From Bugula neritina (Eukaryota; Animalia; Bryozoa), in contig CAXIUT010000276.1 in the NCBI GenBank assembly GCA_964035545.1, forward strand, positions 1 to 17,253: a stretch of 17,253 bases of DNA, in the 5' to 3' direction. Below are positions 4,377 to 17,253 of the stretch, in pieces (position 1 is the first letter of the stretch; the number at the start of each line of letters is the position of its first letter). The notes beneath the pieces were generated by a model. The model did no database searches. It was not told where the DNA came from and worked only from the letters and a program-made list of their open reading frames with translations. Both the position numbers and the translations under genes were made by a program.

Positions 4377-6725
4377 ATGGAATCTTCTGATTCGAAACCT
4401 TCAAGGACAGGTGGACAAGAAGCTTAAAATATCAGAGTTGCAAAAGCAGCACATAGTTTAAGCAACAACTACGATGATGAAAAAGGTTGCCTTGGAGAGA
4501 AACTTTAATAGGTTGAATAAAAAGAGATGAAGGATAGACTTCATAAATATATTGGAGTTATTACATTTTTAGACAACTACAAAGATTTAGGATCAGGTAC
4601 AGGGATTATCATCTCACGTAATTTGGTTTTGACATGTGCTCATAATATCTATGATCATAAAAAAAAATCTCTTTATTCAGGTCTAAAGTTTTATCCTGGA
4701 CATAGAGGAGAATCAAAAAACTTCTACTAAGTTGAGTCATGGTTTTTCCCTAAATAGTACAAGATAGATCATGGATATAAATATGAGTATGCTTTACTAA
4801 AGCTAAAATAAGAATTTCAGAGTTCAGATTTTATTTCTTTAAATATAGGTCAAATGAAAGTCGATAATGAACTAAAAATAGCCATCTATGGATATCCTGA
4901 AGATAAATTCAAATTAATAAGTCATGAAAAAGAACTGTTTCTAGTTAACCAGTGGGGATTGAGTAAAAAAGGAAGAATTATTTAAATAAAAGAAAAAAGT
5001 GGATAAATAATTCACAATATATCAACTTTTCCTGGTCAAAGTGGTGCTCCATTGATCGGAATTGATAAAAACCAAAACCTCGCAATTATTGGTATTCATA
5101 AAGGAGGAATGAAATCAAAAGAAGCAAACATAGCAAGATTGATTACTCCTTAATTGATCACAGTTTTGGAAAAAGAAACTCTTAGTCTTAAAGCCTAAAT
5201 GTTTAAGCCATTGATTGATATTGATTACAGCTAGATAAAAGGTTACTTAAACTTTTAGATACATCCTTTATGGAAAGAAGAGATTTAATCAACTTCAAAA
5301 GTTAATCCAAGAGATCCGAAAGTTTATTATGAGCTAGGAAGTGAACTTTTAAGAATAAATAAAACCAAAGAAGCGATTAAGTGTTATGAAAAAGCAATTG
5401 AGATAAATCCAAACTATAAATAAGCTAACATAAAACTAAAAATTTCTCAATAATAATTGTTAAAAACAAAAAAAATAGGAGAACAAAAAGAATTAAATTA
5501 ATTTAAGATCTAAAAATAAAGATAAAATATTAATTTTGATCAAAAAAAGAAATAATAATCAAAAAATAATGATTATGAGATTGAAAAAGTGAATAAAGAA
5601 AGAAAAAATTAAATTATTTCGGGGTAATAATGAATAAATTAAGATTAAGATTAAAATAGGAAATAAAAATAAAATAAATGGAAAAAAAAGAAGAAATAAT
5701 AGATAATAAGATTCCTATCAAATAATATGGGTATTAAGGTATAATAAAGTTTATGAAAAATGAAACAAAATAAGAGAAAAAACTAAATGTCAGTGAATTA
5801 ACAGTCACCAATACAGTATTTAATCATCAATATAGTGTAAAAAATTAATAACTAAGTTGTACTTAATCATCGATATAGCGTAAAAGATTAATAACTAAGT
5901 TGTATTTAATCATTGATATAGTGTAAAAGATTAATAACAAAGATGTATTTAATCATCAATATAGTGTAAAAGATTAATAACTAAGCTGTATTTAATCATT
6001 GATATAGGGTAAAAGATTAATAACTAAGATGTATTTAATCATCGATATAAGGGTAAAAGATTAATAACTAAGGGGTATTTAATCATCGATATAGAGTAAA
6101 AGATTAATAACTAAGAAGTATTTAATCATCGATATAGTGTAAAAAATTAATAACTAAGATGTATTTAATCATCGATATAGGGTAAAAGATTAATAACTAA
6201 GATGTATTTAATCATCGATATAAGGGTAAAAGATTAATAACTAAGGAGTATTTAATCATGGATATAGAGTAAAAGATTAATAACTAAGATGTATTTAATC
6301 ATCGATATAGGGTAAAAGATTAATAACTAAGCTGTATTTAATCATTGATATAGGGTAAAAGATTAATAACTAAGATGTATTTAATCATTTATATAGCGTA
6401 ATATCATTGTAAAGTAGATGTGGTAAATCATTATTAACAAAGAAATCGTTTGGAGAGGAGTTGTCTAAGTTTCGAAATTTAAAGAAGTTGACCCTTGAAT
6501 TCAAGTAATTTTGGAAGAAAGAAGTCATTGTCTATTCAATTTTGGCTGTTTCAATTCTTGGATCAAGGCTATCAATGAGGATTTAACAAAACTTGAATCA
6601 ATTCAGCTAAATATCTACTAATTATACAAACAGAAAAATCATAAAGATAAGTAGTTGTTGCATGATACAGCTGGACAACTAAATTGAAGAGAAAGGATAT
6701 TCTTAAAGTGAACTACGTGCCTTGA
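4377..6725 (+). CDS. V8/glutamyl-endopeptidase-like serine protease + TPR + charged coiled coil + leucine-rich repeats (multi-intron gene)
   Basis: ATG 4377. Protease motifs GTGIIIS..LVLTCAH (His 4641), YEYALLKL (triad-Asp position is GAG, 4785), IYGYP, STFPGQSGAP (Ser 5040) and IIGIH. TPR DPKVYYELG..AIKCYEKAIEINPNY (~5313-5418). A 20-nt intron at 5624-5643 removes the in-frame TGA at 5631 and restores the frame into LNVSELTVTNT. After the 5816-6442 array come LRR-like KSFGEELSKFRNLKKLTLEF and LTKLESIQLNIY. Further 20-nt introns at 6505-6524 and 6651-6670; TGA at 6723-6725. Confidence 0.8.
5624..5643 (+). other. 20-nt spliceosomal intron
   Basis: GTAATAATGAATAAATTAAG. It contains the in-frame TGA; splicing gives GG|A and an open frame to 5815. 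Confidence 0.8.
5816..6401 (+). repeat. 43-bp tandem array, about 13.6 units; unit = 20-nt GT..AG + 1 nt + 20-nt GT..AG + 2 nt
   Basis: Unit starts at 5816, 5859, 5902, 5945, 5988, 6031, 6075, 6118, 6161, 6204, 6248, 6291, 6334 and 6377. Consensus GTATTTAATCATCGATATAG-N-GTAAAAGATTAATAACTAAG-NN. Units 6 and 10 are 44 bp. Confidence 0.97.
6398..6442 (+). other. Two non-repeat 20-nt introns (6398-6417 and 6423-6442) flanking a 5-nt micro-exon ATGTG
   Basis: GTAATATCATTGTAAAGTAG and GTAAATCATTATTAACAAAG are both exactly 20 nt and GTA..AG. Splicing yields C|AT GTG|AAA TCG = H-V-K-S, in the LRR frame. Confidence 0.65.
6505..6524 (+). other. 20-nt spliceosomal intron
   Basis: GTAATTTTGGAAGAAAGAAG. 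It falls right after the LRR strand LTLEF and moves the frame onto the next LRR (LTKLESIQLNIY). Confidence 0.7.
6651..6670 (+). other. 20-nt spliceosomal intron
   Basis: GTAGTTGTTGCATGATACAG. Splicing extends the frame to TGA 6723; without it the protein would end at an earlier TGA (~6685). Confidence 0.55.
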
Positions 6726-6903
6726 ATAAAATAAAATCAATTAATTAACATTATTTCTTGAGAGTAAAGTGTATCTATTAACAGTCCAGATAAGTAGACA
6801 CTTGTTGTATTGGTGATTATACTATCTTTAAATACTAAAAATATCATATCATTAAAATTAGATAATATCTTTGAAGATAATATATTTTGTATTTTATAAT
6901 CTT

Positions 6904-9123: not shown

Positions 9124-11701
9124 ATGCTGCATGAATTACTCTTCGCCTTGAAAGGAAAAACAGCATCAATAATAAAAAATACAGGTCATTAATTTACTAT
9201 TGATTCTAGCACTTCTATTCTCACAGAACCAGAAGCTGCGATGATAAGTGAAATTGCACAGACAGGATATTATTATCTTCAATTGAACAGTTTTGTGGAA
9301 AGCGAGATGACTGAGATATCATTTGGCGATATAAATAAAAATCCAAGTGTGTATCGTAAAGCTTTTGCTTATGGATTAAAAAAAGCATTGGCATAATATG
9401 AATAAGTAATCAATACGATTGAGAATGATTTTCTTGCTAGTAAATATTTTACTTTTGGCAACTTGAAATCTCTATTGACAAAATACAACATCATCATGAA
9501 AGAATTATGTTCTATTTTAGAAAAAATAATTAGTTAGAAATATCGAGGATCGACTATTATTGATTTACTATGGTAGTATAGTCATACTGGTTCTTTGTGG
9601 TTGAAATAGTGGATAAGTATTATTTTGAAAGAATGTCAAACTGTGTTTATCAATCAGGTGATTGCTTGGATTTTGCATGGATAGATTATAGATTGTTAGG
9701 GGTAGTTTTTTATTCATCGAGTTGTGCAGGTGGCTCAGTAGAGAGTTCAGTTTAGAAGTTAGAATAAAAAAAAAGTTTAAATGAATGCTTGGGATATCTA
9801 TACGCTTGATGGGTAGTTGGTTCCTCAAAGTATAGTTGGATTGGCAACGGCAGTAAAGATACTATTTATTGGCAAAAGTGTTAAAATACTAAGAAGTGCT
9901 GGTAAGATATCAGCCATCCCTTCATAGCAAATAATAAAAGATCTACGTTGTTTATTCCGATAAACTTACAGTCAGATGTTATTTTAAAGCGTTATCTAGA
10001 AAATTCGTTCAGCCATAGCCTCCTAGATGATAAATCTGATCATCGGCTAGCAAAACCTAATAAAATAGTTATAACTGATCAATGATTACTATTTAATGCA
10101 GAAGGGAGATTTCTATCATCATTTTTTATAGTAATCGCATTGTCTGACCCATATAACTAATAAATAGAAATTGCAAAGAAAAGTCAATGAGACTTGTTTG
10201 CCTAATGCTTTTATGCGGTTGGGTTAGTCAGAGGAGGGCAAGAAGGTGAGTTTTTAGATCAGGGCGAATGGTTTTAGTTATGTTGGTTTTAAAAATTTGG
10301 TTGATATCTGTCCTGTGGGTGGTGTTGATTTGGTTGAGGGTAAGTATGTGAGGTTGACGTCTTCTGGTGGTGGTCTTTGGCATCGTCGCAAGCAAATCGT
10401 TTAAAATAATTTCGTGGTGATGTTTAGTGTTTGTTTCAAGCGATCTAAATCTTTGTTCAGAGGGAGAAGATAGAATAGTAAGGAGTTGATGAATAATACG
10501 ATAGCTTTGGTGATTCAGAATCAAAAATAAATAACTGGAGCAGTCTATGACAATCCTGCCAATTTGAGTAGAATCAATGAGTACATAGCTATTTCTGTTG
10601 GATATCGTTATAGCAAATAATAACGTAATTACTAATCTTTGATATCTGTTAGTTATCGAAATTAGAAGAAGTATCATAAACCTATTGATATCGGCCAATT
10701 ACTACCAAAAAGAATTAATTTTATTGATGAAGGTATATATTTTATAAAAGTTGCTTATCAAAATTAGATTCTTAAGATATCAGTCAACCCTTTGAATTCA
10801 GTCTAGATGGCATAGTAAAACACCCTCAAAGTAGATAGTTTACGTATGTCGAGTTATTTGAATTTATAGATGCAAAAAGGAAGTATAGGTTTATTATCGA
10901 ATTTGACTGATCCATGTTGTCAGGTATAAATCTAGCAGTGGTAAATGGTTTGTAAACCGGCTAATTACTATACTGATTTCTTTACTGATTTGCATCTTAA
11001 ATTAGATATCCAATGGCCTTTGAATCTCATCTTGACGAGTGATTTGATGTAGGTTTTTTCTAGGATAAATAAATTTCTTTTTCCTATTAGGCAGATTCAG
11101 GTGTAAATCTAGATGTTGTGGGTGAGAATTCCTCGGAAGATCAAGGAGGCTAGGAAGGAGTAGTTGATGGAAGAGAGGGAGTTGAATATGTTTGAGAGGA
11201 ATTTGAGTGGGACGAGATCGAGGATGAACATGGTGTTGAATAATTTATGGAGGTATTATCAATTTGACGTGATAGCTACTGCTTGGCTCAAATTGAAAAC
11301 GAGTATCGCATAGAGCAACGATTTCTAAGGTAAATAATCATCAAATATAGATGTGATAAGGATGATAACAAAATATGCGAACACAATCCAGACTATGTTC
11401 TTTTTCAATGCTATTAAAATTCAGAGATATATTTATGATATACTTCGTTATGTGCGTAATTTTATCATATTTTTTTAGAGGTAGTTATTCTGTTAATGAT
11501 AGGTTATAGGGGTAAAACGTGATTGACGGACGAAGCAAGCGTGATCACAAGAGCATAGACTAGTAATTCAGAAGAGTAGTGAATGAATTTTATAAATTGT
11601 TGAAGGAGTTATCGAGAAATAGCAATTCTGCGCATTTGTTTCATCTGACGCAGAGGATGTAGGGGTGTGTGGAGGAGAAAAATACCTTTTTGGTTTATTG
11701 A
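9124..11701 (+). CDS. TUBGCP4: Gamma-tubulin complex component 4 (Spc97/Spc98 family) with an internal lectin-like insertion
   Basis: N-terminus MLHELLFALKG, plus SVYRKAFAYGL, QVIAWILHG, KILFIGKSV, DYYLMQKGDFYHHFL, IQWPLNLIL and NNLWRYYQFDVI, match GCP4 motifs. Introns at 11330-11350 and 11481-11502; TGA at 11699-11701. Confidence 0.88.
11330..11350 (+). other. 21-nt intron in GCP4 (3n, no stop)
   Basis: GTAAATAATCATCAAATATAG. AT-rich; removal gives SNDFE-D-VIRM, which fits GCP4 spacing. Confidence 0.65.
11481..11502 (+). other. 22-nt intron in GCP4
   Basis: GTAGTTATTCTGTTAATGATAG. It contains the in-frame TGA at 11497; removal is required to reach the C-terminal FYKLL...HLFHLTQRM helix. 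Confidence 0.85.
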
Positions 11702-14355: not shown

Positions 14356-17039
<2,684 letters not shown>

Positions 17040-17179: not shown

Positions 17180-17253
17180 GGGGGTTGGGGGTTGGGGTTG
17201 GGGTTGGGGTTGGGTTGGGGTTGGGGTGGGTTGGGGTTGGGGTTGGGGTTGGG
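17180..17253. repeat. Right telomere, (TTGGGG)n
   Basis: G4T2 repeats to the end of the sequence, with a few one-base irregularities. Confidence 0.98.

Follow-up and report, generated by a model that had tools for sequence, protein, structure and literature searches.

The window analyzed here, a 17,253-base stretch of DNA (contig CAXIUT010000276.1), carries on its plus strand, at positions 4377 to 6725, a gene of about 568 codons when spliced, whose frames and open stretches encode a trypsin-like protease region, one TPR, a lysine- and glutamate-rich (K/E-rich) linker, and a leucine-rich C-terminal part. Inside this gene, at positions 5816 to 6442, lies a tandem array of short segments that begin with GT and end with AG. 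The original prediction, made from the letters of the window, was that these are 29 consecutive introns of about 20 nucleotides (nt) separated by micro-exons of 1 and 2 nt, such that each repeat unit adds one codon to the protein. On the evidence set out below, we consider it fairly probable that this 29-intron form, with its 45 nt of micro-exon sequence, is the main product of the array.

The source of the window is a peritrich ciliate. The sequence opens with (CCCCAA)n and closes with (GGGGTT)n, these C4A2/G4T2 telomere repeats occupying positions 1 to 81 and 17181 to 17253; because they stand at both ends, we take the window to be a complete telomere-capped macronuclear minichromosome of 17.25 kilobases (kb) with several genes. 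Its G+C content is 20 to 38%. The assembly (G000) comprises 216 megabases (Mb) in 321 contigs, nine of them very large and from another organism and ~300 of them small, and the same telomere repeat begins most of the small contigs that were sampled. TAA and TAG occur in frame across the genes of the window, and TGA is the sole stop. One in-frame codon of the protease region, at position 5006, is TAA in the window and TAG in two other runs, a strain difference that fits a sense reading with one meaning for the two codons.

Structure of the tandem array

Repeat finding and a letter-by-letter parse divide positions 5816 to 6442 into 14 units, each consisting of a 20- or 21-nt GTA..AG segment, 1 nt, a 20-nt GTA..AG segment, and 2 nt; GTG and one more 20-nt GTA..AG segment follow. 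The units start at 5816, 5859, 5902, 5945, 5988, 6031, 6075, 6118, 6161, 6204, 6248, 6291, 6334, and 6377. The first thirteen (5816 to 6376, plus strand) are full units of 43 or 44 base pairs (bp) in which segment A (GTATTTAATCATCGATATAG, 20 nt, lengthened to 21 nt in units 6 and 10), one base, segment B (GTAAAAGATTAATAACTAAG, 20 nt), and two bases succeed one another. Taken together, 27 of the 29 segments are 20 nt long and two are 21 nt, and all keep their GT and AG ends, exactly as the original prediction had it.

The 3′ end of the array (6377 to 6442, plus strand) has diverged and reads as an A segment at 6377 to 6396, a C at 6397, a segment at 6398 to 6417, ATGTG at 6418 to 6422, and a final segment at 6423 to 6442. 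The last two segments had been described as unrelated to the repeat. This holds for the second segment of unit 14 (6398 to 6417), which differs from B, but not for the final one, which is identical to B at 16 of 20 positions, a value near the 99th percentile for intron pairs taken at random. The 3′ edge of the array looks like older, diverged copies.

Tandem Repeats Finder reports a period of 43, with 13.6 copies at 91% matches and a score of 951, and a second, higher-order one of 173, equal to four units (3.4 copies, 93% matches). The repeat is genuine and no assembly artifact, since contigs of two further runs (X1 and X2) pile up on the array and break at its edge. It opens on a codon boundary: the codon ACA ends at 5815, and the same frame resumes at 6443, so that the predicted in-frame join to the downstream exon is present (the bordering exon letters are ...ACCAATACA upstream and AAATCG... 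downstream). Within the units every gap from an AG to the next GT measures one or two bases, and the zero-nt gaps that characterize the ratchet points of recursive splicing are absent. Joined, the leftover bases between the segments make 45 nt, TTT CTT TAT TCT GAT GGG AAA TAT GAT GGA AAT GCT GAT CAT GTG, which read FLYSDGKYDGNADHV. The encoded peptide has a four-residue rhythm (FLYS, DGKY, DGNA, DH(VK)).

Array segments and the introns of the ciliate

The intron class of the ciliate was characterized with a codon log-odds table trained on 89 long open frames in 192 kb of ciliate DNA (the window and 17 samples of 10 kb). Each GT..AG of 12 to 60 nt was scored for a switch of coding signal between frames, with three other dinucleotide pairs as controls; the scan is blind to intron lengths that are multiples of 3. 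Length 20 alone was in excess for GT..AG, with 51 candidates at threshold 3 against 17 to 21 in two size-matched controls and 92 for the far commoner TT..AA control. At threshold 5 the counts were 16 against 2 to 3 in the size-matched controls and 12 for TT..AA, and at threshold 7 they were 4 against 0 in all three controls. The 51 length-20 candidates share a consensus of GTA (40/51), A at position 15 (37/51), T at position 18, and AG.

GTA, A at position 15, and AG are present in all 29 array segments, the 21-nt variants and the two nonrepeat segments among them. Scored on the position matrix, the segments fall in the 84th to 97th percentiles of background GT..AG 20-mers, close to the 81st to 89th percentiles of the three ordinary introns of the host gene on the same matrix. 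The 27 repeat-derived parses are not independent of one another, the independent items being four segment types (A, B, 6398 to 6417, and 6423 to 6442); each of these four is 20 nt long and has GTA, A at position 15, and AG.

An intron of the GCP4 gene on the same minichromosome had been said to resemble segment A. The resemblance is there, but it belongs to a 21-nt segment at 11330 to 11350; the frame-shifting GCP4 intron at 11481 to 11502 is a different one of 22 nt. In that 22-nt intron and in the 21-nt array variants, the A lies at position 15 from the 5′ end and not at position −6 from the 3′ end, which suggests a fixed branch-A distance set from the 5′ splice site.

These length data bear on the possibility that splicing takes out the array in larger pieces, as one 627-nt intron (5816 to 6442) or by distant pairing of donors and acceptors of the same type, leaving few or no micro-exon bases in the messenger RNA (mRNA). 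The GT at 5816 and the AG at 6442 that one-piece removal needs are present, their direct join is in frame, and by the anatomy any A-to-A or B-to-B pairing would drop a multiple of 3 exon bases. We nevertheless regard such removal as unlikely, given that 20 is the only length in excess among GT..AG segments of up to 60 nt and that intron length distributions are reported to be narrow in the three peritrich genomes that have been compared (PMC13685798). It would also leave unexplained why the columns between the segments vary and why they are codon-like in the correct frame. Leucine-rich repeat spacing does not discriminate here: the direct join gives 21 residues and the 15-residue insert gives 36, while the neighboring repeat has about 31.

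Variation and codon signal of the predicted micro-exon bases

Variation between the repeat copies is concentrated in the bases between the segments. Minor letters occupy 17 of 40 cells in the three intersegment columns and 12 of 540 in the forty intron columns (Fisher P = 1.4e-14). Comparison of the higher-order copies, in which an inherited change is not counted repeatedly, gives the same picture: between units 5 to 8 and units 9 to 12, 4/12 micro-exon bases differ versus 3/161 intron bases (P = 4e-4), and between units 1 to 4 and units 5 to 8 the figures are 8/12 versus 8/160 (P = 3e-7). As judged from the letters, there is no reason to expect this pattern from a satellite that evolves neutrally, from one long intron, or from a repeat that is translated. 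The near identity of the introns next to diverse micro-exon bases could possibly reflect diversifying selection on the protein loop, or else short-tract homogenization, which would wipe out new intron variants while merely reshuffling existing diversity at the three columns.

The leftover bases also carry a codon signal. In the frame set by the flanks, the 45 bases score 0.37 bit per codon, compared with 0.04 to 0.14 for the exons of the host gene. That score is reached in 0.015% of shuffles of the letters and in 0.025% of triplet sets drawn at random from the genome (P of ~2e-4), values that are optimistic because GAT is present three times by descent. The other two phases score lower, and one of them, the third phase, holds three TGA codons. 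G+C content at codon positions 1, 2, and 3 is 57%, 31%, and 8%, a fall that resembles the coding sequence of an A+T-rich genome.

The same measurements speak to a reading in which the array is translated like any other exon, TAA and TAG being read as sense, and adds a repetitive insert of 209 residues to the protein. In its favor, no TGA interrupts the frame between 5585 and 6871, and 627 can be divided by 3. Against this, the length of the unit, 43 bp, is not divisible by 3 and successive units fall in all three frames in turn, but variation sits in one and the same set of three columns from unit to unit; a directly translated repeat is disfavored because each column would stand at codon positions 1, 2, and 3 in turn. 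Read straight through, the array has a coding score of −0.005 per codon, that is, about 0, compared with the 0.04 to 0.14 of the gene's exons, and an open frame has a chance of ~0.3 in an array that holds just three TGA. We therefore consider read-through very unlikely.

Coding sequence across the array

Coding sequence continues on both sides of the array. The probable start of the host gene is the ATG at 4377, from which frame 0 runs through the trypsin-like protease region with its TCAHN and GQSGAP motifs. Pfam matched this region weakly to Trypsin_2 (expect value [E] of 0.022, 4521 to 4727, a 69-residue piece) and the next one clearly to TPR_1 (E of 1.8e-11, 5289 to 5420); the K/E-rich stretch comes next. 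In the leucine-rich C-terminal part an LxxLxLxxN pattern is visible by eye, and a Pfam search on short stop-free pieces gave a weak match to the TIR1 domain (E of 0.026) and no leucine-rich repeat family. An Rfam search of 5300 to 6900 returned no family.

Three ordinary introns of 20 nt, all on the plus strand, connect these parts. The first (5624 to 5643), with GTA, A at position 15, and AG, links the frame of the protease and TPR regions (frame 0) to the one that enters the array (frame 2); if it is retained, the frame halts at a TGA at 5631. The exon that follows (5644 to 5815, frame 2) ends with ...KKLNVSELTVTNT on the codon boundary. Downstream of the array, frame 2 resumes in an exon (6443 to 6504) that encodes KSFGEELSKFRNLKKLTLEF plus 2 bases. 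The second ordinary intron (6505 to 6524), recognized by its geometry and the shift from frame 2 to frame 1, leads to an exon encoding (N)HCLFNFGCFNSWIKAINEDLTKLESIQLNIYELYKQKNHKD (6525 to 6650), and the third (6651 to 6670), identified by geometry and the shift from frame 1 to frame 0, leads to the last exon (6671 to 6725), whose open frame ends in the stop TGA at 6723 to 6725. The fully spliced product computes to 568 residues.

Comparison of the window with contigs of three other runs (X1 to X3) lists six base differences inside the gene. All four in structured coding parts (5006, 5249, 6472, and 6570) fall at third codon positions and are synonymous, among them T>C at 6472 in three runs and T>C at 6570; the remaining two, at 5481 and 5483, alter one codon (E to N) in the low-complexity K/E-rich linker. 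Small indels between strains upstream of the array, at 5551 and 5638, are multiples of 3. At the second of these sites a tandem ATTAAG ATTAAG (5638 to 5649) spans the 3′ end of the intron at 5624 to 5643, and one copy is absent in X2 and, at low depth, in X3; depending on the alignment, this loss is a 2-codon exon deletion that leaves the intron at 20 nt.

Both flanks of the array thus look to be under purifying selection. Met is absent from the 80 codons downstream of the array, so the downstream part is not a separate gene. Since the flanks look selected as coding and the downstream part has no Met, coding sequence must cross the array. This result bears on the idea of the array as a minisatellite, selfish or neutral, that disrupts a gene or lies between two genes, has no role in mature mRNA, and owes its intron-like look to one duplicated intron pair. 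Tandem repetition with higher-order structure would suit such an element, as would the confinement of segments A and B to this one place in the assembly. A minisatellite does not agree with the four synonymous flanking strain differences and the in-frame upstream indels, with a downstream coding part that lacks a start codon of its own, or with the presence of the array in other runs and the codon-like character of its variable columns, and we regard it as most unlikely.

Evidence weighing against serial splicing

Several results count against the serial splicing of 29 introns. The repeat copies are not independent, and the column and codon statistics accordingly overstate the number of events. 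The caveat that accompanied the original prediction, that frame is preserved also by read-through and by a single 627-nt intron, proved correct: the 45-nt spliced form, the read-through, and the direct join are all in frame. Straight read-through of the array meets no TGA; the joint chance of such an open read-through is ~0.1, the product of 1/3 for a length of 3n and ~0.3 for three TGA missing the frame. Outside the array, closely spaced intron-like pairs in the 192-kb sample showed no excess over a reversed-sequence control.

Transcript evidence was also sought. Among public runs recorded as RNA, none was found that contains the locus. The three runs that do contain it (X1 to X3) give contigs collinear with the genome, ordinary introns included; because they follow the DNA through the ordinary introns, we count these runs as DNA and as uninformative on splicing. 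Their contigs break at the array, and no joint across it is present. A scan of metagenome contigs for a join of the flanking exons with 0 to 61 nt between them gave 0 matches, as did a scan of these contigs for the array junction.

Recurrence of the geometry in the assembly

The spacing seen in the array recurs elsewhere in the assembly. A strict pattern, [A-N2-W-AG][N][GTAWW-N9-A-N2-W-AG][NN][GTAWW], gave 21 matches against 4 in a reversed control; 10 of the 21 lie in the array and 3 in the ~200 Mb of host DNA, and the others are on the ciliate contigs C147 (2), C209 (4), and C305 (2). The opposite-phase pattern gave 14 matches against 1 in the control, again on C147, C209, and C305, and a version with a 21-nt intron found further matches on C46, C209, C274, and at four places on C305. 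In the 192-kb ciliate sample with the array masked, the strict pattern had 0 matches. On C209, six matches by a looser pattern, or five by stricter ones, fall within 1.1 kb, and all of their intron sequences are different. The overlapping matches on C147 form a chain, ...AG|C|intron|AT|intron|G|GTA... Selection for splicing predicts that geometry would be conserved despite sequence drift.

Clusters of 20- and 21-nt intron-shaped segments spaced by 1 and 2 bases were noted on C209 (14.05 to 15.15 kb, minus strand), C305 (19.1 to 24.1 kb), C147 (61.5 kb), C274 (11.1 to 11.6 kb), and C46 (37.1 kb), with unrelated intron sequences. The micro-exon triplets on C209 include TGC three times, and its product may be Cys rich. 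On C305, the matches at 20227 and 24071 have their micro-exon letters in common and different intron letters.

In the part of the ciliate genome present in the assembly, a search for segments A and B outside the array, allowing up to 2 mismatches, returned only a few matches at chance level. A dispersed mobile (introner-like) origin of the introns was rejected on the ground that A and B are confined to the array in the assembly.

Two further observations concern the minichromosomes. The right telomere of the window contains irregular units (GGGGGTT, GGGTT, and GGGGT), and many small ciliate contigs (C10, C11, C14, and C15; loci L021, L022, L026, L028 to L031, L035, and L037) have internal telomere repeats besides the starting ones, for example at 9689 in L021 and at 5250 in L022; these could be alternative fragmentation sites or several minichromosomes merged by the assembly. 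A DEAH-box helicase-like gene, which may be a spliceosomal helicase homologue, lies on the same minichromosome as the array at 15033 to 16535 and has a candidate 20-nt intron at 16162 to 16181.

Proposed mechanism and implications

We propose that the array is a series of 29 separate spliceosomal introns of a fixed-length class, with 20 nt, a 5′ GTA, a branch A at position 15, and a 3′ AG. Each 20-nt unit would be self-contained, with a 5′ site, a branch A, and a 3′ site inside it, and the introns would be recognized by intron definition, with exon length irrelevant. Neighboring introns would be too close to be engaged simultaneously, and we infer that they are removed one by one, because the footprint of a spliceosome is much longer than 20 nt. 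Splicing would then join the exons, of 1 nt, 2 nt, and in one case 5 nt, into a stretch of 45 nt encoding FLYSDGKYDGNADHV, placed between ...ELTVTNT and KSFGEEL... in the leucine-rich C-terminal part of the protein.

By computation, retaining any single 20-nt intron shifts the frame, and a TGA then ends the protein at 479 to 494 residues; this TGA arises where the last segments join (GTG|A) or lies further upstream, within the retained segment. Retention of the last intron (6423 to 6442) ends it at 510, while retention of a 21-nt intron adds 7 residues in frame.

The array probably grew by tandem duplication at the DNA level, of 43-bp units and of 173-bp (four-unit) blocks, which would add one or four codons at a time. 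Expansion would be harmless to the frame because each spliced unit contributes exactly one codon. We tentatively suggest, as a rather doubtful extension of this model, that a ruler-type spliceosome indifferent to exon length makes the array a generator of loop diversity, in which every 43-bp duplication would add one residue, micro-exon bases would evolve ~20 times faster than introns, and same-type pairing of donors and acceptors could yield in-frame isoforms of variable length.

The claim of one codon per repeat is partly supported. Each test on the sequence that was able to speak against it favored it, namely those on the geometry, the variable columns, the codon signal, the coding sequence that crosses the array, and the recurrence of the pattern; read-through and one-piece removal are equally in frame. 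Confirmation by transcripts would make this the most extreme exon-intron architecture on record, with 627 bp used for 15 residues and runs of 1-nt and 2-nt exons. It would mean that a spliceosome can define introns without help from exons, that neighbors separated by a single nt can be spliced serially, and that a protein can be extended residue by residue even by a tandem repeat with a unit length not divisible by 3. Standard aligners and gene finders will overlook genes of this kind, and the geometry is present at several other loci here.

Comparison with known systems

The original prediction held that no equivalent had been described. Our literature search likewise found no description of a tandem or serial micro-exon array, or of back-to-back introns, in ciliates or elsewhere; single 1-nt exons, by contrast, are known. 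A 1-nt exon has been shown by experiment in Arabidopsis APC11, for which sequential removal of the flanking introns was proposed (PMC4674806), and a single 1-nt exon occurs in Fusarium CYP621A (PMC12940212). These cases share with the array a 1-nt exon between AG and GT, intron definition, and a proposed stepwise removal of the flanking introns. Their exons are isolated, lie between introns of normal size, and are proven by complementary DNA, whereas 14 one-nt exons, 13 two-nt exons, and one 5-nt exon are predicted here in a row between 20-nt introns, as a tandem repeat in DNA.

Recursive splicing at ratchet points, known from Drosophila and vertebrates as cited in the APC11 paper (PMC4674806), also places a 3′ splice site directly beside a 5′ splice site and proceeds stepwise. 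Ratchet points leave zero bases, regenerate the 5′ site, and serve very long introns; the array would consist of complete introns from whose removal 1 to 2 bases would stay. Coding minisatellites resemble the array in that a tandem DNA repeat within a gene lengthens a protein loop and its copy number can be altered by slippage or unequal exchange. The array differs from them in the length of its unit, 43 bp, which is not divisible by 3, and in that each unit would supply a single residue, and would do so only once splicing has taken place.

A further parallel is offered by the tiny introns of near-constant length in ciliates, which measure 15 to 16 nt in Stentor and Blepharisma and have narrow length distributions in Paramecium and peritrichs (PMC9505925, PMC13685798). 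Like the array segments, these introns have the form GTA...A...AG and carry all of their signals internally. As published, they are scattered in normal exons, while the segments of the array stand back to back with 1- to 2-nt spacers. As read from its sequence, the array would combine two known kinds of element, tiny introns and micro-exons, in a tandem form for which our literature search found no precedent.

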